Assembly: GCF_037042905.1 (NCBI RefSeq)
Contig: NC_087255.1
Location: 19,902,001-19,966,000 of the forward strand
Origin: Lytechinus pictus
Lineage: Eukaryota
Reading direction: 5' to 3'
Length of the DNA: 64,000 nt
Part shown: positions 6,559 to 37,200 of the stretch, piece by piece
Layout of the letters: each line of letters opens with the position of its first letter
How positions within the stretch are numbered: position 1 is the first letter of the stretch
Translations under genes and position numbers: made by a program
Notes under the pieces: model-generated
The model's input: the letters and a program-made list of their open reading frames with translations, nothing else
Database searches by the model: none
What the model was told of the DNA's origin: nothing

Positions 6559-7398
6559 ATGGCGTCAATCTGTCCAATAGTTCTTCTTGTGTTTTTTCAG
6601 GTTGTCCAAGGTGGCAAGATCCTGATTTTTAGTGGATACGGTGAGGGCAGTCATTTCATGACTGCTGCTCATGTTGGGAAGGAGTTGATGCGTCGAAACC
6701 ACAACGTCACTCTGCTAATTAGCAATGCGTACGAGCACAGAGCAAACGAAACCAAATACAAGGATTTTAACTTTGAAAAATTCAAGCACAATGTTCCCCC
6801 AGAAGAGGTTCGAGGTCGCCTTGAGCGATTATCAGAGTCGATATTCAAAGGGAACTTCCTGCGGGATGTCCTTTGGAATATGACAGACCTTATGGGTGAG
6901 ATAGTCGATGACTGTGAAGCATTATTCAACGATCAGGTGCTTCTACAAAGACTCCTTGAAGCAAAGTTCGACGTGGCTTTCGTTGATCCCCTATGGCCAT
7001 GTTCGTTGCTTGTTGCCGAGTATGCCGCCAAGAGACATGTGTCCTTTATGGCTACCACATGGAATGACAACATTGCCCGCGTGAATGGCAATCCTTCAAA
7101 TGCTGCCTTTATAGGGGAAATGAACACCGGTTTCACCAATAAGATGACACTGACCGAGCGCGTTGCCAACTGCATCATGATTATGGTCTCAAAATGGATG
7201 GCGACATTTACCAATTCTTATACCCCTATCCAACATGCTCATGGAATTTGTCCAGATCTCAAGGCAGAAGATCTCTACCAACGGTCACAGCTGCTTCTAG
7301 TCAATGTTGATTTCGCATTGGAGTATCCGATTCCAGTCATGCCACATCTGATTCCTGTTGGTGGCCTGTCTACTGGACCTGCAAATGACCTAGCTCAG
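6559..7398 (+). CDS. UGT: UGT variable exon V1 (signal peptide + aglycone-binding domain, 280 codons; 522 aa with constant exons)
   Basis: ATG in gcaacaATGG, hydrophobic leader, GKILIF..GEGSHF motif, FVDP, NVDFALEYPIPVMPHLIPVGGL. Ends CAG|GTTAGT, 840 nt, phase 0. Confidence 0.93.
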
Positions 7399-7861: not shown

Positions 7862-9904
7862 GGGGATCAGGACAACTACCCCCCGGACAATTACCCCCGG
7901 ACAACTACCCACGGACAACTACCCCCGGACAATTACCCCCGAGGACAATTACCCCCCCCCGGACAACTACCCCCCGGACAATTACCCTCTGAGGACAATT
8001 ACCCCCCGAGGACAATTACCCCCGGACAATTACCCCCCCGGACAATTACCCCCAGACAATCATCCCTGGACAATTAACCCCGAGGACAATTACCACCGAG
8101 AACAATTACCCCCCCCCCCCAGGACAATAACCCCCTAGATAAAGGGGGTGCACAGAGTCATACGTCGGCCGTACGTTTGACGTAAGAAGTACTCGAGGCA
8201 TTCTCGAGTATCTAGGAATCTAACGAACGCCGTAAGAAAGCTGTAAAAGTGAGCTCCATCTGCAAATCTTTACGAAACCCAGAATTCGATCATAATTTGT
8301 ATGTCACCGTAGCATAAGATCATTCGTTTTGGCAATCTTCGCAGTGGCGTAGTATACGGGGGGCCAGGAGGCACGTGCCCCTCCCTAAAATTTGGTTTGC
8401 CCCCCTAAATAAACTGACGGAGCAAAAAAAGGGGGGAGAAAGAAAGAAAGAAAAAAAAAATAATGAGAAAGATAGAAGAAAAAAGAAGAGGAAAATGAGA
8501 GGAGAAAGAGGAGTGAATAATATAAGGTTAAGGGAAGACTTTTTATGTCACTATATAAAATTTTCGCTCACGCTTCCCGCTCGCATTGCCTTTTCGATGA
8601 GATTCATATCTTGCCCAATATAGGCTGATATGGAGCTTGAAATATCACGTTTTGAAGTCAATATACAAAACAGATTTCATCTCGGATATCGAGCTTTCAT
8701 TATTTTTTTATTTACAAATTGATTTTTTCAAGTGCTCTGTAAAATGTCCGTTTTATGGTCTAAATATTAATATTTATAGCTCACGCTGCTCGGTCGCATT
8801 ATTTGATTTGCATAGGCCTACTTCTTTATAAATTCTTACAAACCGTCCTTAAAATGCACCTTAAACGAATTGTATACTATCATGATTGCCAATTTGTATG
8901 GAAAAAAACACTGTATTTGATTATGTCATATTGTTTACAATTTAGTAATTTTGTTACTTAATTTCCTTCTTTAATGTTTAATTGCTTTCATCCGAGAATA
9001 TAACACACAAAAACACCTTGTAATTTTACCATTTAGAGTCAAATGGTAAAATTACAAGGTGTTCTTGTATTATCTTTGCATAAAGTTTTTTAGCTTACTG
9101 TATTTAGTTATAAAGCCACATCTTAATCTGGAATGTGCACCAATTGTTTCATAATTCTTAGCTTCTTGTTAGTTGAATTGTTTTAGAATAACAGGTTTAT
9201 AGGTCCTTCTTGACAGTGTTAGTGTTGTTAGTTGTGTTATCGACTTTGAATATTTCTACGTATGAAGGTGTCTTTTTTACGTTTTATCTTTTTGCCCGAT
9301 TTCTTTCCTGAAATTAAACCAAAAATAAATTTTAAAATCAGATCAGTTTGAATCAGAGATATTCAGGTTTTGTGATTATTACGACTAATCGACGGTGTTC
9401 AATTGTTCTATGAAAACTTAGTATGAGGGCCAGTTTACACATTTTCTGATGTATATATCCCATATAACCCATAGCCAAATGGGAGGTTTCGGGTGCAAGC
9501 CCCCCCCCCCCCCCCCCCCATTTTTCATGATGCAGAAGGCGCCGCTAAACAAAAACAAAAAAGTAAGAAAAAGGCGGAAAAAGGAAAAAGAAGAAAGTGA
9601 GAGAACAGGAGAAAGAGCAATATAAAAGAGAAAGAAAAAGTTATTAACGTAAGATAAAGTAGAAAATATTTCCAAAACCTGTGCCACCGACCAAAACTTA
9701 CAATGGGTCCCGCTTAATTCTAACATTGATGCCGGAGAGAAGGGTGGATTATCTGGGGGTGATTGTCGGGGGGTAATTGTCCTCGGGGGGGGGGGGGTAG
9801 TTGTCCTCAGGGGGTAATTGTCCGGGGGGTAATTGTACTCGGGGGGGGGGGGGTAATTGTCCGGGGGTAGTTGTCCGGGGGGGGGGGTAATTGTCCTAGA
9901 ACCG
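7862..9904. mobile_element. Foldback-like element with inverted terminal arrays of a ~15-bp unit
   Basis: (GGACAAYTACCCCCC)n at 7869-8137 and its reverse complement at 9748-9897, with matching inner boundaries (ccccctagataa / ttatctggggg). No clean TSD. Confidence 0.75.
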
Positions 9905-10167
9905 TTTGTTTGTTATGTGTTTGATTGTGCAGAGGTGTGTTTGATTCCACGTTAATGTTGATGTTAAGGCGCATGAAAACAAAAGAAACCGCTGAGAAAC
10001 TAACTCATCACCACGGAAAAAATAACTGTGACTTTCAATATTGTGTCATTTTGCAACTTTTGAATTTTGACCTTGCCCCACATTTCAAGGCACTGCACCT
10101 CCATGTGAACCATAATCATATCATGTAGGGTATCATTCAAAAGAAAATTAAATGATCTATTCATTTG

Positions 10168-10316
10168 TAGTGTAGTAGGTTTCACGGTACACCATGTATT
10201 CTTTCTTGGGCATATGTTGGTCCTGAAAAGGACCACCCAATCTTTGGGTGGTCCTTTTCAGGACCAACATATGCCCAAGAAAGAATACATGGTGTACCGT
10301 GAAACCTACTACACTA
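10168..10316. repeat. Perfect palindrome, 73-bp arms with 3-nt loop
   Basis: 10168-10240 is the exact reverse complement of 10244-10316; the loop is TCT. Confidence 0.95.
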
Positions 10317-15672: not shown

Positions 15673-16515
15673 ATGGCTGCTCTCACAATTATTGTTCTTC
15701 TGCTTGGATTTCTACAAGTCTCTCGAGGAAGCAATGTTCTGATTTTTAGTGGCTACGGTGAAGGAAGTCATTTTATGTCTGCTGCTCTTGTTGGAAAGGA
15801 GCTTATGCGTCGTGGCCATAATGTCACTGCAATAATAAGCAATGCTTACGAGTACAGAGCAAACGAATCCAGATACAAGGATTTCAACTTTGAAATATTT
15901 AAGCACAATGTTCCTCCTGAGGAAGTTCGGCTCCGCCGAGAGCGTTCCAAAGAGTCGATATTTAATAGAACCTTATACAAGGAGGTCAATTTCGTCAGAT
16001 CATCCATAATGAATCGACTTCTTGATGATTGCCAAGCGTTGTTCGATGACAAGCCACTTCTACGAAGACTCCTGCAAGCAAAGTTCGATGTTGCTTTCAT
16101 TAATCCTATTTGGCCGTGCTCGTTGCTTGTTGCTGAGTATGCCGCCAAGAGACACGTGTCCTTTATGGCTACCACTTGGATGAACAACGTTCCTCGCTTG
16201 AATGGAAATCCTTCAAACACTGCCTTCGTTCCAGAGTGGAGCACTGGTTTCACGAATAAAATGACATTTATCCAGAGGGTTATCAACAACTTTGCAGCCA
16301 TGCTTTCGGTATGGATAACTTCTTCTTCTGATTCTCACACCGCTATCCAACATGCTAACGGGATATGCCCTGATCTTTGGACCTCGCAGCTTTACCAGAG
16401 GTCACAACTGCTTCTGCTTAATGTGGATTTCGCTCTAGAGTTTCCGGTCCCAGTCATGCCACATCTAATACCGGTTGGTGGCCTGTCTACTGGACCAGCA
16501 GATGATTTAAGTAAG
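15673..16515 (+). CDS. UGT: UGT variable exon V3 (281 codons; 523 aa with constant exons)
   Basis: Intact paralog. Ends AAG|GTCAGT, 843 nt, phase 0. Has FINP where the others have F(V/I)DP. Confidence 0.92.
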
Positions 16516-18664
16516 GTCAGTATTGTACAGTAAGATCGTGTACAAGAACACGAAGAGAATGTGATAACTCTACAAAGCACATAAAGAGCCTTACACTTTT
16601 TCAAGAAGAATTATATATTTTTTTTTTTTTTTTTTTGGGGGGGGTGTCACAGGTCGATATTTTTCTGTGACGTAAATGACTGCATACTTAAAGGGGCGCT
16701 GGACTTAGATCACAGTGGATCTCCTGTTTAAGGTTAATACATTTATCATTTCGTCATAAATACGCCTAGAAATGATATCTAAAGCTGATGAAACGTTAAA
16801 ATTAATTCAGAACTCTAAATAACTCTAATTAAGAACAGTGCCGCATAACATGTATTCGGTCGTGAATACATGGACGATGTATTATATCTCAACGTCATTG
16901 GTAAGGCAAATGACATCAGTAACTCAATTATCACTTTTATTGAAACCTGGGGAACTTAACATTTCTTATATACCGACCACTCTTCCTAAAGGTTGCTAAG
17001 ATAAGATAACCGCCATTAGTTGCGCCAGTGTAGGCCTATCTGAAGCACGTATCGATTGTATTCAAGTAATAATTGGTCCAAGGTATACAATTATAAAAAC
17101 ACACCAGTTATAAAATATTTTCACAATCAATGTACGTGGGTTTACGCACGTTTCCAATGATATCACACTATCCATTGCAATGGCTGTTTTCACGTTTACT
17201 GTTCTTCTGCTTGGATTTCTACAAGTCCCTCGGGGAAGCAATGTTCTGATTTTTAGTGGATACGGTGAAGGAAGTCATTTTATGTCTGCTGCTCTTGTTG
17301 GAAAGGAGCTTATGCGTCGTGACCATAATATCACTGCATTAATAAGCAATGCTTACGAGTACAGAGCAAATGAAACCAAGTACATTGATTTAAAGTTTGA
17401 AATCTTCAAGCACAATGTTCCTCCTGAGGAAGTTCGGGTTCGTCATGAGCGTTTCACAGAGTCAATATTCAGAGGAACCTGGTTGAGGGATATCCTTTTG
17501 AACGCTACAACCATAATGAATTGGTTTATCGACGATTGCCAGGCGTTGTTCGATGACAAGCCACTTCTACAACGACTCCTTGAAGCTAAGTTTGACGTGG
17601 CTTTCATTGATCCTTTATGGCCATGCTCGTTGCTTGTTGCTGAATACTCGGCCAAGAGACATGTGTCCTTTATGGCTACCACATGGATGAACAACGTTCC
17701 CAGCGTGAATGGAAATCCTTCCAACGCTGCCTTCGTGCCAGAGGGTAATAATGGCTTCACAAATCACATGACTTTGATCCAGCGGGCTCTGAACTGTATC
17801 ATGGGCATGGTCAATAAATGGACATTGAAGATGAGTGATTCGCACACCGCTCTCCAACATGCTAACGGGATATATGCCCAGATCTTCGGACCTCGCAGCT
17901 TTACTAGAGGTCACAACTTATTCTGCTTAACGTGGATTTCGCTCTAGAGTTTCCGGTCCCAGTTATGCCACATCTAATACCCGTTGGTGGCCTGTCTACT
18001 GGACCAGTAGATGATTTAAGCAAGGTCAGTATTGGACAGTAAGATCGTGTACAAGTACGCGAAGATCAAGGCACATAAAGAGCCTTACACTTTTCAAGAA
18101 GAATTTATTTTGGGGGCGGGGGTTGTCACATGTCGATATTTTCCTGTGACGTAAATGACTGAATACTAAAAGGGGCACTGGACTTAGATCACAGTGGATC
18201 TTTTGTTAATAAAGGTTAATACATCTATCATTTCGTCATAAATACGCCTAGAAATAATATTTAAAGCTGATGAAACTTTAAAATTAATTCAGACTCTAAA
18301 TAACTCAAAATAAGAACAGTGCCGCATGACATGTATCCTGTCGTGAATATATGGACGATATATTATATTTCACGTCATTGGTAAGACAAATTGCATCAGT
18401 AACTCAATTATCACTTTCATTGAAACCTGGGGAACTTAACATTTCCTATATACCGACCACTCTTCCTAAAGGTTGCTAAGATAAGATAACCGCCATTAGT
18501 TGCGCCAGTGTAGGCCTATCTGAAGCACGTATATCGATTGTATGCAAGTAATAATTGGTCCAAGGTATACAATTATAAAAACACACCAGTTATAAAATAT
18601 TTTCACAATCAGTGTACGTGGGTTTACGCACGTTTCCATTGATATCACACTATCCATTGCAACA
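16516..18664. repeat. Duplicated inter-cassette spacers of the ~1.5-kb UGT tandem unit
   Basis: 16516-17179 and 18025-18664 are highly similar along their length; a third diverged partial copy lies at 20010-20390. Confidence 0.9.
17180..18024 (+). pseudogene. UGT: UGT variable exon V4, disabled
   Basis: 845 nt (843+2). Extra TA at ~17871-17874 (gggatatatgccc vs gggatatgccc) and CAG>TAG at 17905-17907 in the ancestral frame. Donor AAG|GTCAGT retained. Confidence 0.88.
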
Positions 18665-19512
18665 ATGGCTGTTTTCACGTTTACTGTTCTTCTGTTTGGA
18701 TTTCTACAAGTCTCTCGAGGATGCAATGTTCTGATTTTTAGTGGATACGGTGAAGGAAGTCATTTTATGTCTGCTGCTCTTGTTGGAAAGGAGCTTATGC
18801 GTCGTGGCCATAGTGTCACTGCATTAATAAGCAATGCTTACGAGTACAGAGCAAACGAATCCAGATACAAGGATTTCAACTTTGAAATATTCAAGCACAA
18901 TGTTCCTCCTGATGAAGTTCGGCTCCGCCGAGAGCGTTCCAAAGAGTCGGTATTCAATAGAACCTTATACAAGGAGGTCAATTTCGTCAGATCATCCATA
19001 ATGAATCGACTTCTCGATGATTGCCAAGCGTTGTTCGATGACAAGCCACTTCTACGAAGACTCCTGCAAGCAAAGTTCGATGTGGCTTTTATTAATCCTA
19101 TTTGGCCGTGCTCGTTGCTTGTTGCCGAGTATGCCGCCAAGATCAGAGACACGTGTCCTTTATGGCTACCACTTGGATGAACAACGTTCCCCGCTTGAAT
19201 GGAAATCCTTCAAACACTGCCTTCGTTCCAGAGTGGAGCACTGGTTTCACGAATAAAATGACATTTATCCAGAGGGTTATCAACAACTTTGCAGCCATGA
19301 TTTCGGTATGGATAACTTCTTCTTCTGATTCTCACACCGCTATCCAACATGCTAACGGGATATGCCCTGATCTTCGTACCTCGCAGCTTTACCAGAGGTC
19401 ACAACTGCTTCTGCTTAATGTGGATTTCGCTCTAGAGTTTCCCGTCCCAGTCATGCCACATCTAATACTGGTTGGTGGCCTGTCTACTGGACCAGCAGAT
19501 TATTTAAGCAAG
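18665..19512 (+). pseudogene. UGT: UGT variable exon V5, frameshifted near-copy of V3
   Basis: 848 nt (843+5). ATCAG inserted at ~19142-19146 (aag-atcag-agacac vs aagagacac). Donor AAG|GTTAGT retained. Confidence 0.85.
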
Positions 19513-19524
19513 GTTAGTATTGTA

Positions 19525-19992
19525 CCCGGGGGGGGGGGGGGAACTTCCATTGACGAGTGCATACCATGCGTTACCATGGGGATTCGAAAAGCATCCCAAA
19601 CAAGTATTTTCCACCCCTTAACAAGTATTGGCGTATGAAACCCTACCCTTAACAAGTATTGGAAACAAAACGGTACGCTTGACAAGTATTCATTAAATTT
19701 ACCCCCTAAACAAGTATAACGATATCTTGTTATATCACGGACGTGATCACGGGCGGTGGCTTTACCTTGACTTGTATTGGGTTTAGTACCACCCCATACA
19801 CCTCGCTCAAATCGGACCCTAAACACGAGTGTTGGACCAAAAAAGTACATCCTTTTTAAAAGTATTTTAGTCTTTTCATACCCTCGCAAATCGGTCCGTA
19901 ACCACGTAGTTTTCCCAGCAAAATGTATTACCCTTTTACATTATTTTAGTGTTTTTTACACCCTTATTACGTTACGAGCGTAACGTGCCCTA
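19525..19992. mobile_element. Truncated copy of the CCCGGG-ended MITE
   Basis: Colinear with 41401-41934; right TIR missing; starts 12 nt after the V5 donor. Confidence 0.85.
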
Positions 19993-20389: not shown

Positions 20390-20533
20390 TCATCCGCACC
20401 TCTCAGCTTGACCAAAGGTCACAACTGCTTCTGGTTAAATATTGCTTTCGCATTAGAGTTTCCAATTCCAGTCATGCCGCATCTGATACTGGTTGGTGGC
20501 CTGTCTACTGGACCATCAAACAGTCTTCCTCTG
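20390..20533 (+). pseudogene. UGT: UGT variable exon V6, 3' remnant only
   Basis: Encodes FALEFPIPVMPHLILVGGLSTGPSNSLPL then CTG|GTCAG. Directly fused to a copy of the inter-cassette spacer (20010-20390), so the start and ~700 nt of exon are deleted. Confidence 0.85.
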
Positions 20534-22537
20534 GTCAGCTTTTCATTTTTAGGTGTTTCTCTCCATTTGAACCACGTAACATTCATAACGTTTTCGCAAC
20601 ATCCTTCCATTGCATTCAATGTTTTGCAGTTACGTAGGGAAATGAATTAAACCACGGAAATATAAATTTTATACATAAAACTAATCACCCCCCTTAAGAA
20701 TTATACCGGATTGTAAATATTAAAAGGATTTGTGCATTAATGGGAAGGAGAGAATGAGGTGTCACAATTTAATCTATTTATTTGCAGCCACATAAAGTTC
20801 GTGTCAATTCAGAAGGCGCAGAGACATAAGACGTCTCAGTTCAGAATATCGCAGACAGCTGCAGGGGATGGGGGATGTGTGGCTTTTTAACATTCCAATA
20901 TAACATCTGTGACCTATTGCAGAAAAATATTACAATTAAACACAACGCGATCTAAATATCACACGTGTCGTGATTTTTAACCAATCGAAAGCGCGCATTC
21001 TGGACTTGCGAATGAAGTTAAAACGCAATGAGCTCCAGCGAGCAAGCAAAATGTCATCTTTATTACAAAATCCAAGTTTGTGATAGATTTTGACATAATT
21101 TTCAGAAATAATCATATTTCACCTTTATCCCTTTTTTTTGGGGGGGTGGTTGGTCATATTTTCGTTTTTTTAATTATCAAGACAACTCGTTCTAAAATAT
21201 ATATATCCACTTAATCAATACGAATCTCATTCGTAATTAAGTTTATGCAGGGTTCATGTATCTTATTATGACGACAGCCCGTTCTAAAATATATATTCAC
21301 TTCATTAACAGAAATTCCATTCGTACTATAGTCAAGTCCACCCTTATATACAAAAGTTTCTTAAATAAAAAGAGAAAAATAAAGAGCATAAAACTGAAAT
21401 ATTCAGTATCGACATCGGATGTTAGTTCAGTAATTTATGCTTGCTTTTCTTGAAAATATAATGCACAAAACAACGAAATGCAAATGAGGGAATCTGGATG
21501 ATACCGCTCTTCTATATATCGTTATCTGAATTATACACTATCTCTCTTTTTCTTTCCTTCTTTTTTTACAGATTTAACCATAACGAGACACTTCATCAAA
21601 ATGTTTACTTCGTTGCGATTTCACAGGTTCACGAAAGAATCAAACTTTATTTCACATCATGGTGAGGAGAAAACAAAAATATTTGTAATTCATCTGATAA
21701 AAATGCAAAGATATAGTGAGTGGATGACATCGTAGATTCCCTCATTTGCATACCGAGCGACCAGAAAGTGCATGCCTGTTTTGTGAAAATGAGCGAAACT
21801 TTCTCATTTAACATCTGACTTGGATGAGATTTTCAGTGTTAGTTATGAGCTCGTTTGATATTTTTATTTAAAAAAAATGAAATAAAAATCTGCTGTTTTA
21901 GGGGGTGGGTTCTTGCATGGACTTGCCCTTTAAGGATAAAATATAATATATTGTACATCATATTTTTAATAAGTTTCAATCCATCACTATAATCATGATA
22001 AGGGAAATGAACGTACATACGTTATTAAAGGTGTTTAAAACACGTGGGACTTAATAAGCTCAACCATTGTTTGCTATTCAAGATGCTGTAGAGGCTTTAA
22101 ACTGTTGAGCACACATTACGAACGTATACGTGCACCTTCAAAGCATTAAAGATTCATTTACATTACAATGACTTCTTTTTTCATTCACGCCATTGTCCAG
22201 TGAATCGGAATTTCTCTCTGTAAATACACCGATTCTTCTGCATGTGCTGACCCTTATCCTTCAAGAGGCGCAGTTGTGTGGGGGTTTTCGGTTTCTTTCC
22301 CCTTTCTCTCTCATGCATCACACTCTTCTGGTTTTGGTTGTGAAAGAATAATTAAGTGAAGGTATAATAGTGATTTATTTCCCTTGATGATGATGATAGC
22401 TGACAGGAGGAGTATTTGACTAGGAGCATCTGTACATTGGTTGCCTACGTTCTTGCCGTGATAAACGATATACATGTACATGGTTTAATTATCTTGGAGA
22501 ATTGAAATGCAAGATCAGTGGCTTAACTGGAGTAGAA

Positions 22538-23428
22538 ATGGATAGAACTGGATCTAGATCTCTGCGAAATAACTTTTCTTACCTCATATTTGTGACCCTG
22601 ATTGTCCTTCCACGAAGGGGATACTTCTGCGATGGTGCTAATATCTTTGTATTCGCCTCGTACGGAGAAGGAAGTCGCTTTATGGCGCCTGCTAGCATTG
22701 CTGCAGAACTCACAAACAGGGGTCACAACGTCACAGCTCTGATCAGCAACGCTTATAGCTACCGACAGGACGACGAACTGTATAAGAATATTTCTTTCGA
22801 AATCTTCACGCACAAGGTCCCTCTCGACGTCGTTAAAGAGCGTCAGCTCCGTATTCCACGAGCAGCCTTTGACAAGTCGACTTCATGGAAGTTCGACTTC
22901 GTGAGGAAAATCAACAAAATTGCAGCGGAGCACATCGAGGATTGCGAAGCCATTCTCGATGACAAGGAACTTGTCAAGCGGCTGCTCGATCGTGAGTTCG
23001 ACCTCGCAATCATCGACCAGTTCTGGCCGTGTTCGATGATCTTGGCCGAGCACGTTGCTCGTGGGCATGTCGCCATGATGCCGACAGCCTGGATGAATGC
23101 GATCGCACGCCTAAATGGAAACCCTACCATTTTCGCAATCGTCCCTGAGGTCAACACCGGGTTATCCCCGCAAATGACATTCAGACAGAGAATCAAGAAT
23201 TTCTTTCATTCATTCCTTGTCTCTTTCTCCAAGTGGGCAGTTAATAAACTCACACCTGTAATGAGAAAGTATGACATCTGCCCAGGATATTACCCATCCG
23301 ACCTCTATCAACGAGCTCAGCTGGTAATATCCAATGTCGATTTCGCTGTAGATTTTCCTATTGCTACCCAACCGCATATCATTACTGTTGGTGGATTAAC
23401 AACTAGACCTTCAAAGTCATTGTCTCAG
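22538..23428 (+). CDS. UGT: UGT variable exon V7, divergent (297 codons; 539 aa with constant exons)
   Basis: Intact ORF with GANIFVF..GEGSRF, IIDQFWPC and NVDFAVDFP. Ends ...SLSQ CAG|GTAATT, 891 nt, phase 0. Confidence 0.9.
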
Positions 23429-23806
23429 GTAATTCCCAACTAAAGGACATCTAACAAGAACATTTATATTGCTAACATGATCAGTCCATGAAATTTTCAT
23501 CATTCTGCGCAAAAGCCACATTTCAACAGCTTATATAGAATTCTATACATAAACAAGAAAACAACTTAATAATAACGTTCTGCAATATCTTAATATACTA
23601 TTAAAGCATTACCAAATTTTAAAGGTTTTGCATTAGTCATCATCCTAGAAAACACCACATGACAATCTTACTATCCCGTTATTTGCTCTGAAGTTTAATA
23701 TGCTTAAGCATAAGTACACACAATGGCAAAGCTCGTTTTTACGGGCGCGGGTTCAGAAGGGACACAGATATAGGGTGCATCTTCGGCCATGAGCCACAGC
23801 TCCCTT

Positions 23807-23960
23807 ATACCTCGGTCACATTTGCTCTACGGCGAGTCAAAAACAGCCGTTCAATATACAAACCACCCATATTATGTATTATGTAGCTCGTACATAAAAT
23901 GTTAAAACGGCTGTTTTCGACTCGCCGTACGGCCGCCGTAGAGCAAATGTGACCAAGGTA
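23807..23960. mobile_element. Short MITE
   Basis: TIRs tacctcggtcacatttgctctacggc / gccgtagagcaaatgtgaccaaggta. Confidence 0.75.
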
Positions 23961-24148
23961 TTACTTTAAAAATCCTGGACCAAACAACAAACAGAAACAA
24001 AAAGGCATTATCTAGATTTTTTAGCTTCCCTAGTGTTCCCTTCAACATATGTTCAACGTACGTTTTCTTGGGCGCAGGCTATGTTGGTGTAGTTAGTTTT
24101 GAAGTGATAACAATAGGGTGCTATGACCTATTACCGTTGCCCCCCCCC

Positions 24149-24182
<34 letters not shown>

Positions 24183-24861
24183 AGAAGATTATGATGTTGA
24201 ACAGAAGAAGGAGATGATGTATTACACAGGAAGAACGCTGTTTAAAATTTTATTCAACGCTGTTTATTATATGAATTTCACAGTAGTTGTTACAGTTTAA
24301 ACAACTATGCTTAATTTATTGAGAATTAAAATGAAAATTTAACTTCGTTGTTTGGGTTTTTTAAACAATTATTGTCAGGTTCATATGGTAAACAGCTTTG
24401 CAGATGTTTTTTTACTGCGTATATAATCAAAATACGTAAAGGTCTACCTCTACAGAAAATATAATACTTACGTTTTCCTTTCGTTGGTATATTGACCCCA
24501 TTGTAGATTTTTAAACATTCTTAGCTTAAGCACGATTGATGTGCAAATTGTTAGATCTGACGACTCCCCTAGAGTTTGATTGGCTCCGAAGTTCCTGTGA
24601 TAACTGTCGGATAAAACATCCGACAAATCCTGTCATGAAACGCTTCCCAGCTTGATAATACTATACAAACATGTATTTTTATCAATGACGAGGATAGTAA
24701 CAAATTATGAGAATATGGTATGTCCCGAATCTTTCCATATTGCAGGCTTCTTGTTTTGTTTTTGTATTTTACTTTATAAGTTATGTTTCCTACGCTTAAC
24801 CATTACTATGCAAATATTATGTTGACGATGTTTTGTATCTCTCTCTCTCTCTCTATTTCAG

Positions 24862-25087
24862 GAATTAGAAGAGTATGTCCAGAGTTCCGGGGATGACGGG
24901 ATCATCATCTTCTCGCTTGGGACCTATGTGACGTACATGAAGGAGGAGCTCATCGCTGTCTTTGCCAATGCCTTCGCGCGACTTCCGCAGAAAGTCATAT
25001 GGCAGTTCAAAGGGACACCACCGGCTGTTGTTACCAAGGTGCCCAATATAAAGACCATGGAGTGGTTACCTCAAAATGACTTGCTTG
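24862..25087 (+). CDS. UGT: UGT constant exon C1
   Basis: (CT)n tract then tttcAG|GAA. ELEEYVQSSGDDGIIIFSLGT...WLPQNDLL(G). Donor G|GTAAGG. 226 nt, phase 0 to 1. Confidence 0.95.
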
Positions 25088-25194
25088 GTAAGGACAAGCT
25101 TCTGTTTCAGGGTCCATCAGTGGTAGGAGTACTAGTATGTGGTGGTGCCGTTATGAATAGTAGTAAAGTGAGTGGTATAATTAATATTAGAAGT

Positions 25195-25224
25195 AAAGTA
25201 GCAGCAGGAGTAGTAGTAGAGGGA

Positions 25225-25261
<37 letters not shown>

Positions 25262-25363
25262 CAGTGGTAGTGTAGCTATAGTAGTACAGTGAGTGGTATA
25301 CTTAGTAGTAGCAGTAGAAGCAGCAGCATCAGCAATAGTAGTAGGCCTAAAAATGGAACTAGT

Positions 25364-25399
<36 letters not shown>

Positions 25400-25443
25400 G
25401 TAGTAGTAGTATATAGTAGTAGTAGTAGTAGTTGTTGTTGTAG
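25195..25443. repeat. (GTA)n/(CTA)n trinucleotide microsatellite in the C1-C2 intron
   Basis: Directly visible. Confidence 0.9.
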
Positions 25444-25691
25444 TTTCAGAGCAGAACAAAATAAAGCGTACTTGCGTCCCGTTGCTTAAATTTAGGCAAG
25501 TCATGTGCAAGGTCAACCAAAGCATTAATAATAATAATAGTCTCATGAAAGTCACAAATGCGCGCCACTGATTTGTTGCGTTTAATTGTGAACGTTTTCT
25601 TTCTGTGATTCTTTGTAATACTGCCTTTTAGTAAAAGAATATTTCATTAGATATCATGCCATTATATATTCTCCATTTTTTACTGCCACAG

Positions 25692-25911
25692 GCCACAACA
25701 AAACCCGGGCGTTAATGTACCAAGGGGGCAATAACGGTCTCTACGAGGCGCTTTATCACGCCGTACCCATCGTGGTCATACCCTTGATCGGCGACCAGCC
25801 CGACGTCGCAGCTCGGGTGACGAGTAGAGGCATGGGTCTCAAGCTCGACATCAAGACCATTACCTCAGAGAAGATCGTTGACGCCCTCAATGCTGTCATC
25901 CATGAGAAACA
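25692..25911 (+). CDS. UGT: UGT constant exon C2 (UGT signature, UDP-sugar binding)
   Basis: cacAG|GC. GHNKTRALMYQGGNNGLYEALYHAVPIVVIPLIGDQ. Donor CA|GTGAGT. 220 nt, phase 1 to 2. Confidence 0.95.
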
Positions 25912-26879
25912 GTGAGTATCTTGAGCAGAAACATGGGGGCTAGACGCTATCCCCCCTCCCATTTTACACACATCGCGGGGAAAAGACGTCGTTCTTCGTT
26001 TTCTACTTTTCTAGCCTTTTTACCCCTCATCTGTCGTTTTCTGAAATTCCGCTGTAAGACCATGAAACTTGCTTGATCTTTCAAAAGTCTTTCAATGAAC
26101 TTTCAAAGATCCCCGAGGTCTTATATGATTACTGTTTGATTGTTCAGTGGTCTTCGTGGTCTCCGTGATCTCAAAGACTTTTTTGAAACTTTTTGAAACA
26201 GTCCTTCAGCGTTCTTGCAGGAAAGTGGTCTTTTAGTGGTCTTTCAGCGGTCTCTTGATCGATGAACTTTCAAAGTTCTCATTAGTCTCTCCATGATCTT
26301 TCAATAGTCTCTCATTTTTTTAGGGGATATCTCTGAAAGTCAGTCTTTCAGAATTCATGTAGGGGTCTAGGTGAGTCTTCCAGAGGTCTTGGTTAGTTTT
26401 TTCAGAGAAGTCGATCAATCTTTCAACAATCTCTGGCAGTACGCCATATAATCATTCAGTGATTCCTTAGTGGTATTTCCTGCTGGAAATATTGTTTTTG
26501 GTTTTTATGTTATTTATTTTATTGATATATTCATATTTCAATTTTCAGGGATTTTTCAGAGCCATTCCATAGAGATCCCAAATTTCAGTGATCTCGGAGA
26601 CTGCTAAAAGACCTTGCCAAATTATGGTATTTCAGTAGTCTTTCAATGGTCCCTTTCTATGGAATGGGGGCCTGACTAAAATGATTTTCAAGCAAGAGAT
26701 TACTTGGTTTTCTTGAGGGGGAGGGGTGAAGAAAAGCAAGATTGAATTTAGGAAAGGAAAAATCATTTCTCTCTTGTAATACTAAGTGTTGTTTGTTGGG
26801 GATGTGCTCTCATGATTTTTTTGCATGTGGTTAGTAAGTATGCCTGTCATAATTACATTTTAATTTCTCATAATTCCAG

Positions 26880-27162
26880 ATACAAAGAAACGGTGCAACA
26901 GCTGTCCGCCATTTTCCACGACCGCCCGATGAGACCAGTCGAAAAAGCCGCATTTTGGATCGAACACGTGATCAAACACGGTGGTGAATACATGCGATCA
27001 CCTATTCATGACTTAACGTGGTATGAGTATTACCTCATCGACGTCGCCGCCTTCTTCCTTCTCGTGATTGTCGTGCTTGTCGTTTTTATTGTGTATTCAT
27101 GTAAATTTGCCTTCAGGTGCTGCAAGAGAGTTTGTGTCGGCAAGAAAGCAAAGACTGAATGA
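26880..27162 (+). CDS. UGT: UGT constant exon C3 (TM helix, dilysine ER-retention tail)
   Basis: ttccAG|A. YKETVQQLSAIFHDRP..AAFWIEHV..LTWYEYYLIDV, hydrophobic TM, ends KKAKTE-TGA. Phases sum correctly. Confidence 0.95.
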
Positions 27163-29467
27163 TGACAGTTTTCAAGGTGATAACATTAATTATGATAACT
27201 AATGTCCAAATGTTGACGCAGTGTCTGGGGGAACGTTTCATGAAGACTTATGTTAGTGATTTTTCACCGACAGTTGTTACAAGCGACTGAAAATCCTTAC
27301 GTGTGATTGGCTGAGAGCAAATTAGTCGGTAAAAATCAAGGACAAAACTCGTCATGAAATATTCCCCCTGTCTGGCAGAATTAAATGCTATATTATTCCT
27401 GCAATAGAAATGAGTAGTTTCACAGTGTATTTTTTCCAAGATTTAACAATCACTTTCAGGATAGTTATTTTGTATTGCTTATTCTGTTCGCTGTAATTTA
27501 TTCTAAGGCAATTCCAATCATAGTTATGCAAGAAGGAAAAGGGCGAAGTCGATAAATAATTTATCGTTTAATATATGTCTTTTCAGAGCAATAGCAATAA
27601 TACTTAAAATGGTTGACTTTTTTTCCTTTGTCATCTGTGGTCTCAAGAAGGGTTCTAATTTGAATAAACTTGCAAAACTATCTTTAAACGTATATGAACT
27701 TAAATTGAAGTATTTCTTTCTACCAAATTATGCAAAAATGAATATGTTATATACCTCTTCTCAATCGAATGTCTCCTATTGGAACAGATTTATGTGTTCC
27801 CATTAATATATAAGGATACCGGATATTTTCTATATCCATTACCAAGACACGTTCAAAAGTCTCGTCCTAGGCGTTGACGCAATCGGAATTTCACAGAGGT
27901 TTCCCCAACAGTGCCGATCTATCTTGGACAATTATACATATGGTGACAGTGCGCTTCGCGGGATCCCCCGATGTAAGCCGCTGCTAAGTTGCTCACGCCG
28001 ACATTGGGATTATGACGTCATGGAGTAAAATGAATATGTGTATCATGCCATCGTTGACATGGCAATTAGTAAACAGTAAAAAGTCAATAATTATAGACCT
28101 ACGATTTCATGAATTGGTAGTTTGTTTTTCGGATGCTGGTGAGGTATGTTCACAAGTAATTGTCTGTATTTCACTTGATTATACATAACGCTCCGAATTG
28201 GACATTACAGGCTAATATTCTAATATGTGTTTTATTTACCTTTAATAGGCATTCACTTTTTTTGTTTACAAAGGTTAGTTTCTATACAGGAATAGCTTGT
28301 TCTGTAATCACGTTTAATTTGTGCAGAATTTTAATGATGTCATGTCATCACTCTAAAGCACAAAAGCATACTAGAATAGAGAAATGGTTAAAGTGGTGCC
28401 AATGTTATTTTAGTCGCTTTCGACGCGAACCAAGTCATTTTCTGACTATAATAAAATGATAATGACTATACATCTAGGTTTCGTCCAGCTGATATTAACC
28501 AATTATATTTTATAGTTATTATTTACAGCGTATGACTTTATCACTTGATTTGAGCTATTAATAATTTTTTTATTTCTCTGTTATGACCAAAACCTTGCTT
28601 TAGTGTGGGGCAACTGTCAAAACATCTTTAGAGTTAACAATCTAAACCTTTTTATTGTGATCGTATGACGTGCAATTGTAATTGGAGTTAATATCATGCA
28701 TAAACATGACAGTAATATTTTAGGTTAAATTCAATTGTAATTTAGAACTGTAGAATGAATTTGTGCTTTCAGAACTTATCTGACAAAACCCTTTTCTCGC
28801 CGTGGTGATTTTTTGATTGATTTTTTCTACAGTACAAGGATGTATTCTGAAGTACAGATGATATGTGTATTTTTCTTGTTGAGTCTATGATTCAATAAGG
28901 AAATAATATTTGAACTCAGAAACACGCACTCATCATTTTATCAATGCTAAGTTTATTCTTTCATTTTGATTAAATTTTACTTTTTTACTGCAGTACTAAA
29001 ATGTTCCATGTGAGGTTTTATTGAAACAACTGCTTGAGAGTAAATTAACATAAACTGAGAGATGGGAAGAGGAGACAGGGGCCCGGGGGGGGGGGTAAAG
29101 GGTAGAAAGGGAGAGGGAAAGAGGGAAAATAGATAAATAATATAACGTCATACAAATATAGAACATAGTAAGAACATGTAACATAGAGTTAAGGAAGTGG
29201 AAGAAGGGGGTATTTATGTGAGGGAGGATATGTGTGAGGGTGCATGTGTGTGTGTGTGTGTGAGAGAGAGAGACAGGAGTGAATAAGAAAGTGATGGGGA
29301 AATGGGAAAGAAAGGGAGTGTGTGTGGGTAGGAGAGGGTGTGTGTTAAAAAACGTAAAGAAACCGTCGGTGGGAAGGAGAAATTGACAGACTGAAGAAAT
29401 GACACGAGACGAAAAGTTGCTTATAAATTTAACGATCAAGCAAAGAGAAAACCACAAAAGCTTTCAT

Positions 29468-34292: not shown

Positions 34293-37200
34293 CTATAAAA
34301 CAACATATACTGACGCATCAACATTCCCGACAGACCCAACAATCGATTCGTAAGAAGGCGCTGCTATCGTTTCTCTGACGTTCGTTGGTGATGTAGAGTT
34401 TGTCCGAAAGTTAAATTGCGGATCCAAAGCTTCGCTGTATGACGGAGGCGGGGGCACTGAGGAAATATCCCCATACGCTGGCGGTGACTGGGGATCCGTG
34501 CCTCCAGATCGCTCCGAACCCCGCGTGACTGAAGGTGTTCCTTCTAACGATACCTCTTGTTGATAGGTTTGAGGATTTTGTTCCGATGGCGCCTCGCCTG
34601 TCCCCGTTTCCTCACTACGCGCCACACCCCTGAGACATTTGCAGGATACGACGAACAGCAGCGCACGCCCTAAGGCAGAGATACCCCTGGAAATGCGCTC
34701 AAAGATCCTAGCCACCACATTCCTTATACATGATGCTATTTCACCAATGCAACTCCCACACTGACAGTTGTTGTTGTTGTTGTTGTTGGACCGCCTTCGT
34801 GTACAACAAAAGACGACGCCGATTCCGATAATAACAGCGACAGCGGTAGAAAATATATTTGTTGATGCATCGTCGTCACCAATGAGAAACTCGGCCCAGT
34901 ATCTGCCTCCGGACCCATCTAAGGGGATCAAAGAACGAGAGGTAATAGACTTATGATTTTGAATGTTATTTGACAGGGGAAATGGGGCAACCGCCCTATC
35001 AGGATGAGCGGAACGTGTTTTTGTTTTTGTTTTTTTAATGTTGGGGTTAAGCCGAAGGGGGGGGGGCTCACAATTAGACGGAGGGGTGGGATAGTATTTA
35101 AGGGTGAGGTATCGATCGTGAAACTTCTTACCCCTGTTTTACAATGCAAAATATATATGACGTTACATTGCGGTCGATTTGCCCCCCCCCCCCCCCCGCC
35201 CAGCCTCCATCAAAATACACTCTCTCCTTTTGCAAGCATGATAAAGCCTACCATTTTCTCTATCATGCTTATACAACTTATTTCTAACTGGTATCACCTT
35301 CAATCAACAGATCAATATTAATACTATCTTTTTATATATATATAGTTCATTCAATGGAAGAGCATTTAAAAGGAAACAGTGATGAAGTGGCTAGATGTTA
35401 TAATAACATAAATAAAATATATACTTAGGCCTATTTGTTTATATCAATCGTCTTGTTCTAAATAAGGAAAGAGGTCAGAATTCCGTCCATTTGATATTTT
35501 AAAAACTATGTTTGATAACAGTTTCGGGCTTTTTTTTCAAATAAATCATTGATTTGAATGAGAAAAATATCATACCCTTCGTCTTCTTGCAGATGAACTT
35601 TAATTGTTCGTCGCAGTTTGCAAGTTGCCACCGTCCATTTCCGTTTATGTCAATTGCTGAACAACCCGAGGTTTCTCCAGACCTATTATCAAAGCTGAGG
35701 AAGGAAACAGAGGTGAAAAGGGTCCATTGATTATCCTTTTCCGGTGGCGATCTCCCCCCCCCCACCCCCGAATTAGTACTTTTGCACCCGACACGTGGGG
35801 CTGTTTTGTAGGCCTTAATTGAATCAGACTACAATTCTTTCTTTCTTGGCCATGTATTTTTTCCAGAGTCGTGCTTCAATTTTCAATCAACACCAAAATC
35901 CTTTGAAAATTCGTTCTTGGCGAGCGAGACTCGAACATGCGTCAATGAACCCCGCCAATGAACTTGACAAGGATTTGCTTATATACTGCTTGAGCAACAC
36001 CGATCGAACTGATAGATGGGTCAGAATTACGCTATAACCCAACATTTCATAGCCCCATGAATATTCACAGGCGTAGTCTGACTAAATATTCCCTATCAAA
36101 TCGTCATTCCCATAGACGTATTCATGAAAAATTTACGGGTATGGTATACTGCCCACACGCGTCGGGTACACAAGTACTGACGGAATAAAACCGCTACCCG
36201 AGGGGGGGGGGGGCTCGGATTTGGAAAGCGTGGGGGTGAACGGCTCCAAAATCTGAAACACTACCCTTAAGAACTGAAGTTGCTCTAAAAATAAACCCCA
36301 AAACGGCCCTCTGTAAATGCTCGAAAACTGGAATTTAATAGAAAAAAGGAGGAATGCGTGAAATTTGAGACGCCTAAAATGAGGGGTTTAAGAACGGGGG
36401 AATGCAGGTTGGTCAATAAAAAGGGGTGAAAATTATATCTTGGGGAAATGCTTGCAAGACCTTTATTGTCTTAAAAGAAATTATTGATTAAAGCAATTCA
36501 ATTTCTGTAAAGAAAATCCTTCCCTCTATTTGCCTAAAAAAATAACCAACAACTTTTTAAGACAAAACAATGTACGAACGTATAAATGCCCATTCGTCGT
36601 TACCGTCAATATATTCGAATGATCTAGTAAGAATTACTCACTTGTAAAACAAAGGACTCAAACCATCTAGCCATTGCCAATCACTGTTCAAACCCAACCA
36701 CACGAGTGATGCTGTCTCGTTTTGAAAAGAATCTGGAAGAAAGGAAATTCATTTAAACTTAATGTTGTCATCAATACTATATTTTTTTCTCTCAATTCTA
36801 AAGAGACATTAGCGAGTTTTAGCCCCGCGACGCAGAACATTCTTAGGAACATAGAAAATATATTGTCAAATGCCCTTCATGACAATGAGCAACCATGCAA
36901 GAAGTCTTTGTCAAAAAATGGTGAATCAAAACAGCAGTTCCGTCCTGAGCAATTTTTCGTCAACTCCAACACTCAGGACGAACTGCTGTTCCAGTTCACC
37001 AACTTTCGACAAATACCTCCCAGCTGTTCTTTGTAATTTGAATGGCATTTTCAATGCATTTACTGTGTTTTATAATTCGTTATAAATCTGCGTAGCGATG
37101 CGAAAACGCGCTATTGTAAAAGCGGCCGCGGAACGGTCAATTAGATCTAAACAAGCTTGGTAAGAAACAACATAATTGAGATACAAAATAATAAATAAGT

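Follow-up and report, generated by a model that had tools for sequence, protein, structure and literature searches.

An alternative first exon of a sea urchin UDP-glucuronosyltransferase locus is conserved, expressed and spliced with arginine in place of the catalytic histidine

The sea urchin Lytechinus pictus carries, in an independently evolved array of variable exons, a conserved, expressed and correctly spliced UDP-glucuronosyltransferase (UGT) isoform that lacks the catalytic histidine. The isoform is encoded through V7, one of the variable exons (V exons) that precede the constant exons C1 to C3 in the window analyzed here, a stretch of 64,000 nucleotides (contig NC_087255.1, positions 19,902,001 to 19,966,000, forward strand). 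We put at roughly 0.55 the probability that V7 joined to the constant exons (V7+C) is a selected and active UGT isoform of a UGT1A-like locus, serving acceptors that need no general base. We rank this reading above that of a non-catalytic partner, and the latter above ordinary O-transfer with another proton sink. The catalytic His deprotonates the acceptor hydroxyl and so acts as the general base for O-glycosylation. To our knowledge, the His-Asp pair is treated as near-universal among inverting GT1 enzymes, and the only well-studied natural His-less exceptions in animals that we know of are human UGT1A4 and UGT2B10, which have shaped thinking on N-glucuronidation. These two enzymes carry Pro (UGT1A4) or Leu (UGT2B10) at the His site and N-glucuronidate amines.

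The replacement can be read directly from the DNA: codon 47 of V7, in frame from the ATG at 22538, is CGC (Arg) at 22676-22678, in the context F-A-S-Y-G-E-G-S-R-F-M (Table 1). A six-frame motif scan of the window found G-E-G-S-R-F once only, at 22664, and G-E-G-S-H-F at 6640, 11807, 15757, 17264 and 18749, corresponding to V1 through V5, all five of which use CAT as the His codon. Both the replacement of His by Arg in V7 and the G-E-G-S-H-F of V1-V5 had been reported in an initial annotation of this DNA, which further described V7 as otherwise intact, as the most divergent cassette and as the one closest to the constant exons. These descriptions hold as well: the frame is open from 22538 to 23428, with 297 codons, no stop and an end at CAG before a GTAATT donor at 23428 in phase 0; identity to the other V exons is 43-46%; and C1 begins at 24862.

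Table 1. Coordinates of V7, its key codons and the constant exons within the window
Feature	Position	Strand	Evidence
V7 5' untranslated region, with approximate transcription start	22200..22537	+	RNA coverage, contig starts
V7 variable first exon: 297 codons, putative signal peptide and acceptor-binding N-domain	22538..23428	+	Pfam, RefSeq, RNA
Arg47 codon CGC, catalytic-His position	22676..22678	+	Sequence; RNA/contig runs; L. variegatus and contigs L001-L003
Asp160 codon GAC, dyad partner, I-I-D-Q-F-W-P-C, retained	23015..23017	+	Alignment; model strand end
Constant exon C1	24862..25087	+	tblastn; splice joint 23428 to 24862
Constant exon C2, UDP-sugar signature	25692..25911	+	Joints 25087 to 25692 and 25911 to 26880
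Coding portion of constant exon C3, with envelope helices, putative transmembrane helix, K-A-K-T-E tail and stop	26880..27162	+	Sequence; model helix 493-531

Joined to C1, C2 and C3, V7 encodes a protein of 539 residues identical to XP_054765166.2, annotated as 'UDP-glucuronosyltransferase 2C1-like [Lytechinus pictus]', in which the V7 exon accounts for residues 1-297. The exon alone matches PF00201 (UDPGT) with an E value of 2.9e-26 (92.8 bits against a cutoff of 19.5), and the record of the full protein carries both PF00201 and PF06722. An AlphaFold2 model of V7+C, made from a 48-sequence alignment, reaches a pLDDT of 91.3 and a pTM of 0.85. Its best Foldseek matches are GT1 enzymes (TuUGT202A2, OleD, YojK and UGT51; E values of 1e-19 to 1e-22), and its C-domain has TM scores of 0.93-0.96 to human UGT2B7, UGT2B15 and UGT2B17. 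The predicted fold is the GT-B fold of GT1, with two Rossmann-like domains. No animal UGT N-domain was matched by sequence in the PDB, where only human UGT2B C-domains (about 47% identity for C2) and distant GT1s were found. The UDP-sugar signature of the C-domain (W-x-P-Q-x-D-L-L ... H/Q-G-G ... E ... D-Q) is present. At 25719-25742, C2 reads M-Y-Q-G-G-N-N-G, with Gln where vertebrate UGTs read His (T-H-G-G); this Gln is common to nearly all echinoderm UGTs aligned and is therefore a trait of the clade and not of this gene. Sequence and model together predict a hydrophobic N-terminal helix at residues 7-28, a C-terminal helix at 493-531 and a K-A-K-T-E tail fitting KxKxx.

Within the model, strand beta1 spans residues 35-39 and helix N-alpha1 starts at residue 46, so that Arg47 is the second residue of the helix and is predicted to occupy the canonical base position of GT1 enzymes. 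The proposal that this residue stands at the position of the catalytic His is also borne out by alignment with the vertebrate UGT1A1-like motif D-G-S-H-W. Misalignment of the motif was considered and rejected on the same grounds, the column being S-H in the vertebrate motif and in 120 of 137 representative proteins, and Arg47 falling at the start of N-alpha1 in the model. The catalytic His expected there is absent from V7 and Arg47 stands in its place; by analogy with UGT1A4 and UGT2B10, which are His-less members of the family, this absence would bear on mechanism and not on homology. The partner residue Asp160, which closes strand 156-160 in the model, aligns with an Asp conserved in 64 of 72 echinoderm N-domains and with the Asp of the vertebrate UGT1A-like T-D-P.

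Among the variable exons tested, the translations of V1-V4 and V7 match the Pfam UDPGT profile over positions of about 9-263. Frame changes disrupt both V4 (17114-18018) and V5 (18596-19635), while V6 (20429-20530) has shrunk to 34 codons that correspond to the 3' piece of a V3-type exon. We rejected V6 as a lost His-bearing sister exon of V7, as it shares 77% identity with the V3 ortholog of L. variegatus and only 45% with S. purpuratus X4. A tblastn search with an intronless paralog of the same genome as probe placed one set of constant exons in the window, downstream of the seven V exons and remnants, and the boundaries of C1-C3 were read from the sequence after this placement. V3 (16102-16104) and V5 (open reading frame 18596-19177) read F-I-N-P-I-W-P-C, in which the dyad Asp has become Asn and the catalytic His is kept, the converse of V7, where the His is lost and the Asp kept. 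The L. variegatus locus (L054) has broken copies at about 9385-10303 and 17866-18674 and a remnant at 23964-24068, in places that match V4-V6. A minus-strand open frame of 281 codons at 34296-35138 has no Pfam match. On another chromosome, a tandem of about ten near-identical UGT N-domain exons with the motif P-E-Y-S-H-P-K-S (G000:C14:14406000-14431000, covered by L050 and L051) may be a second variable-exon cluster.

Expression was assessed by mapping RNA from three studies to positions 22000-27400, as two stranded raw runs (X19 and X20) and two contig runs (X1 and X15). In the stranded raw RNA, where a first mate on the minus strand denotes plus-strand RNA, V7 is covered on its sense strand at a depth of 15-28 and the introns are empty. 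The joint from 23428 to 24862 (GT..AG) is crossed by 16 and 21 raw reads (37 together) and by one contig in each contig run, and the joints 25087 to 25692 and 25911 to 26880 are also seen in RNA. The claim that V7 is a first exon joined to the constant exons is thereby confirmed in both reads and contigs. In X19 and X20, the V7-C1 joint counts (16 and 21) are close to those of the C2-C3 joint (18 and 22), so V7 is present in most transcripts of the locus in those two samples. In X1 the depth over V7 is about half that over the constant exons, and in X15 about a third; this 2-3 fold excess of the constant exons implies that other first exons are also used. Across the RNA samples covered here, V7 is a major first exon and may be the main one. 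RNA coverage starts in the 22181-22361 bin (approximately 22200-22360), contigs start at 22198 and 22367, and the RNA runs contain no splice joint entering V7 from upstream, which together indicate that V7 has its own transcription start. The splicing seen in reads is V7 to C1 only; use of the other V exons is taken from NCBI isoform models of related urchins, namely X2-X4 for S. purpuratus and, for L. variegatus, an isoform of 522 aa with the gene end in common.

No alternative base was found at 22676-22678 in the four RNA and contig runs of the three studies, and the variants listed within V7 are one synonymous and four conservative changes (I69V, D78E, R216K and T239A). A one-base deletion at 23063, in a GGG run of V7, appears in 3/30 and 3/35 RNA reads of two runs and reflects either an artefact of the reads or a low-frequency frameshift allele. 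Two intronic segments also attract reads. In the V7-C1 intron, a short dispersed repeat at 23800-23965 has very high RNA and contig depth (more than 10,000 in the contig runs), with reads on both strands, numerous variants, joints of the 'opposite strands' type at 23896/23903 and loose ends into many flanks, and looks like a transcribed interspersed element. In the C2-C3 intron, reads of opposite orientation (first mate on the plus strand) cover 25982-26343 at a depth of about 3, with a contig depth of 130-160 and three linked variants at 26071, 26086 and 26097; this segment is either an antisense transcript or another repeat.

The Arg at the V7-type position is kept in at least three urchin species. 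The L. variegatus protein XP_041476122.1 is identical to the L. pictus protein at 516 of 539 residues and uses the same CGC codon, and its locus has several V exons, some of them broken, followed by the V7 ortholog and then by C1-C3. A protein from genomic Logan contigs (P0001), 77% identical to the V7 exon protein, reads G-E-G-S-R-F, and CGC is found in all three Strongylocentrotid-type contigs (L001-L003). S-R-F occurs in all ten distinct V7-type sequences, including the S. purpuratus-type P0158 and six distinct Logan sequences. P0158 (UniParc UPI0002228EA3) is an old S. purpuratus-type model of 674 residues, in which an X4-type His exon is followed by a V7-type Arg exon and then by C1; it is a mis-prediction that fuses two alternative first exons, and it still records their order. 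The initial annotation had called for the Arg to be checked in reads and orthologs, and the Arg came through: the four runs contain no His, and the CGC codon recurs in L. variegatus and in L001-L003. An error in assembly or sequencing was accordingly rejected as the source of the Arg, as was a private allele; we found no point in support of either, and the invariant runs, the CGC codons of other urchins and the ten V7-type sequences leave both a negligible chance.

A tree of 28 echinoderm N-domains places the four V7-type rows in one clade (support 100/99), with the His-bearing X4 exon of S. purpuratus as its sister (97/96). V1-V3 and their orthologs form a separate clade with lineage-specific duplicates, and the Diadema proteins, all with His, branch apart. 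Since the V7 clade has a His-bearing sister, the change from His to Arg occurred once, on the V7 stem, before the split of Lytechinus and Strongylocentrotus. This split dates to about 50 million years ago. Pairwise dN/dS for V7 is 0.28 between L. pictus and L. variegatus and 0.20 (dS 0.88) between L. pictus and a Strongylocentrotid contig; between L. pictus and L. variegatus, V1 gives 0.33 and V3 gives 0.29. By these ratios, V7 with its Arg has been under purifying selection since the change. Of 29 columns with at least 80% conservation across the 72 other echinoderm N-domains, 26 are retained in the V7 clade, Asp160 among them, and the only exceptions are L37F, H47R and P276A. A pseudogene or decaying exon was rejected, given the intact frame, the dN/dS of 0.20-0.28 and the expression and splicing of V7.

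Arginine is rare at this column. His is found in 69 of 71 other echinoderm N-domains. The L. pictus genome has at least 77 N-domain matches, most of which were retrieved; about 55 cover the column; 51 of these have His, and Arg in clean alignment is seen in V7 alone. Among the best 150 representatives, out of 858 hits in a library of 1.8 billion proteins, 137 cover the column, with 120 His, 8 Arg and 9 other residues (one Pro). The Arg bearers of this set fall into at least four lineages, or independent origins: the urchin V7 clade; P0081, an ENA protein whose nearest relatives have His; the hemichordate Glandiceps talaboti (XP_077986674.1); and a supported clade of five divergent proteins, including two from Lingula. 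The six full-length Arg bearers from outside the urchins are stand-alone proteins with their own C-domain, and all six have an intact WxPQND...HxG...E...DQ donor signature, with the Asp kept in five. The combination of Arg with intact donor sites in stand-alone UGTs argues that Arg at this site is compatible with a working transferase. These Arg-type invertebrate UGTs (Lingula anatina XP_013390324.1 and XP_013412569.1, Glandiceps, P0081, P0091, P0128 and P0143) share Ser-Arg in the same column with V7 but belong to unrelated lineages, with 27-30% identity to V7+C, and the full-length proteins are products of stand-alone genes whereas V7 is an array exon. P0081 is a 319-residue N-domain product, the Lingula-type Arg group is an old clade of its own, and Glandiceps is without the dyad Asp. 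Our literature search, which covered subscription journals thinly, turned up no account of UGTs with Arg in place of the His and none of variable-exon UGT loci in echinoderms. The V7 isoform is already present in RefSeq under a generic name, and its Arg-for-His feature is new to the literature searched.

The arrangement of the locus resembles that of known clusters. The initial annotation had suggested a possible parallel to UGT1A4 in an independent array, and in layout the parallel stands, since V7 supplies a His-less isoform within a variable-exon UGT array. As in V7, the His of UGT1A4 and UGT2B10 has been naturally replaced within the UDPGT/GT1 family, with the Asp partner and donor site kept, and UGT1A4, too, comes from a single variable first exon within a locus of shared constant exons. 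In contrast to the uncharged Pro and Leu of the human enzymes, however, the Arg of V7 is cationic, and the change in V7 is independent and took place in echinoderms; human amine specificity cannot simply be carried over to V7. Vertebrate UGT1A-type clusters with variable first exons include human UGT1 and zebrafish ugt1, ugt2 and ugt5 (PMC2819257, PMC1885805). Like the urchin locus, these clusters have tandem acceptor-domain first exons of about 290 codons and common donor-domain exons, with distal exons that duplicate and decay by lineage and a proximal exon that is the most divergent and is retained one-to-one. The urchin locus has three constant exons where the vertebrate clusters have four, and its exons group with echinoderm UGTs, which points to an independent origin. 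The one-to-one orthology and promoter-proximal position of V7 recall UGT1A1.

In the reading that we prefer, V7 would serve as a promoter-proximal alternative first exon which, spliced to the three shared exons, gives a 539-residue, putatively ER-anchored GT-B glycosyltransferase. Arg47, with an assumed contact to Asp160, would provide no general base at cellular pH, and the isoform would therefore be specialized for acceptors that can attack the UDP-sugar without deprotonation. On chemical grounds, the positive charge of Arg47 would favor nucleophiles that are already anionic, such as carboxylates and very acidic enols or phenols, and neutral amines would be a second option. V7 has one-to-one orthologs while V1-V5 turn over by lineage, and this contrast suggests that its substrate is endogenous and conserved. 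Retention of Asp160 over a dN of about 0.18 may be a weak sign of activity. As the C-domain is common to other isoforms, its conservation says nothing on the activity of V7 itself, and purifying selection would also be expected of a structural or regulatory subunit without catalysis.

These last considerations touch on the reading that V7+C is catalytically dead and acts as a regulatory partner, tuning activity in hetero-oligomers with His-bearing isoforms or other UGTs. V7+C would then resemble the inactive splice variants of human UGT1A. UGT oligomerisation and dominant-negative UGT1A variants are established and speak for such a role, as do the missing general base of V7, the sharing of the whole C-domain with other isoforms and a purifying selection that fits a binding function. 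We nevertheless consider a dead partner unlikely, as Asp160 and 26 of the 29 conserved N-domain columns are kept, as V7 equals the constant exons in abundance in two of the RNA runs, leaving little active partner from the same locus there, and as Arg with Asp recurs in stand-alone UGTs with intact donor signatures, which would be unexpected of dead enzymes. Distinctly unlikely, by comparison with the human enzymes, is an amine (N-)glycosylating isoform as a functional parallel to UGT1A4 and UGT2B10, although V7 too has lost its catalytic His within a variable-exon array. V7 has a cationic Arg where the UGT1A4/2B10-type mark is an uncharged Pro or Leu, and on chemical reasoning its charge should disfavor tertiary amines in their protonated form as well as a quaternary ammonium product. 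The initial annotation had tied loss of the His to N-glucuronidation; UGT1A4 and UGT2B10 are indeed His-less, but the link is not strict, for O-glucuronidation has also been reported for His-less human UGTs (PMC8781437, PMC4401096), so that His loss alone does not predict N-specificity.

The same reports, together with the retained Asp160, could be turned in favor of ordinary O-glycosylation by V7+C, with Asp160, water or the substrate taking up the proton and Arg47 only reshaping the pocket. This is very unlikely in our view: His in 120 of the 137 representatives and in 51 of about 55 L. pictus paralogs implies a strong need for it, and an Arg fixed since before the Lytechinus-Strongylocentrotus split suggests a specific role over a neutral swap. 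A wider reading, possible but tentative, is that Ser-Arg with the dyad Asp constitutes a recurrent and so far unrecognized catalytic variant of animal UGTs, with at least four origins, in which the guanidinium would bind and orient a nucleophile that is already an anion, be it a carboxylate or a highly acidic enol or phenol, and no neutral hydroxyl would be deprotonated. The urchin array would have captured this variant as a conserved, promoter-proximal and highly expressed exon for an endogenous acidic metabolite; the hemichordate would since have lost the Asp, and the other origins would be urchin V7, P0081 and the old Lingula-type clade.

An inactive V7+C would provide a case of a pseudo-UGT under selection, and an ordinary enzyme would mean that the catalytic His is more dispensable than assumed; interest would rise further if Arg-type UGTs are a distinct catalytic class. 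L. pictus is genetically tractable and V7+C is small enough for heterologous expression, which makes the question directly testable. Together with the Arg-type UGTs of other phyla, V7 offers a natural experiment on the switching of acceptor chemistry in the UGT family, and it raises the question of whether the array architecture favors such switches.
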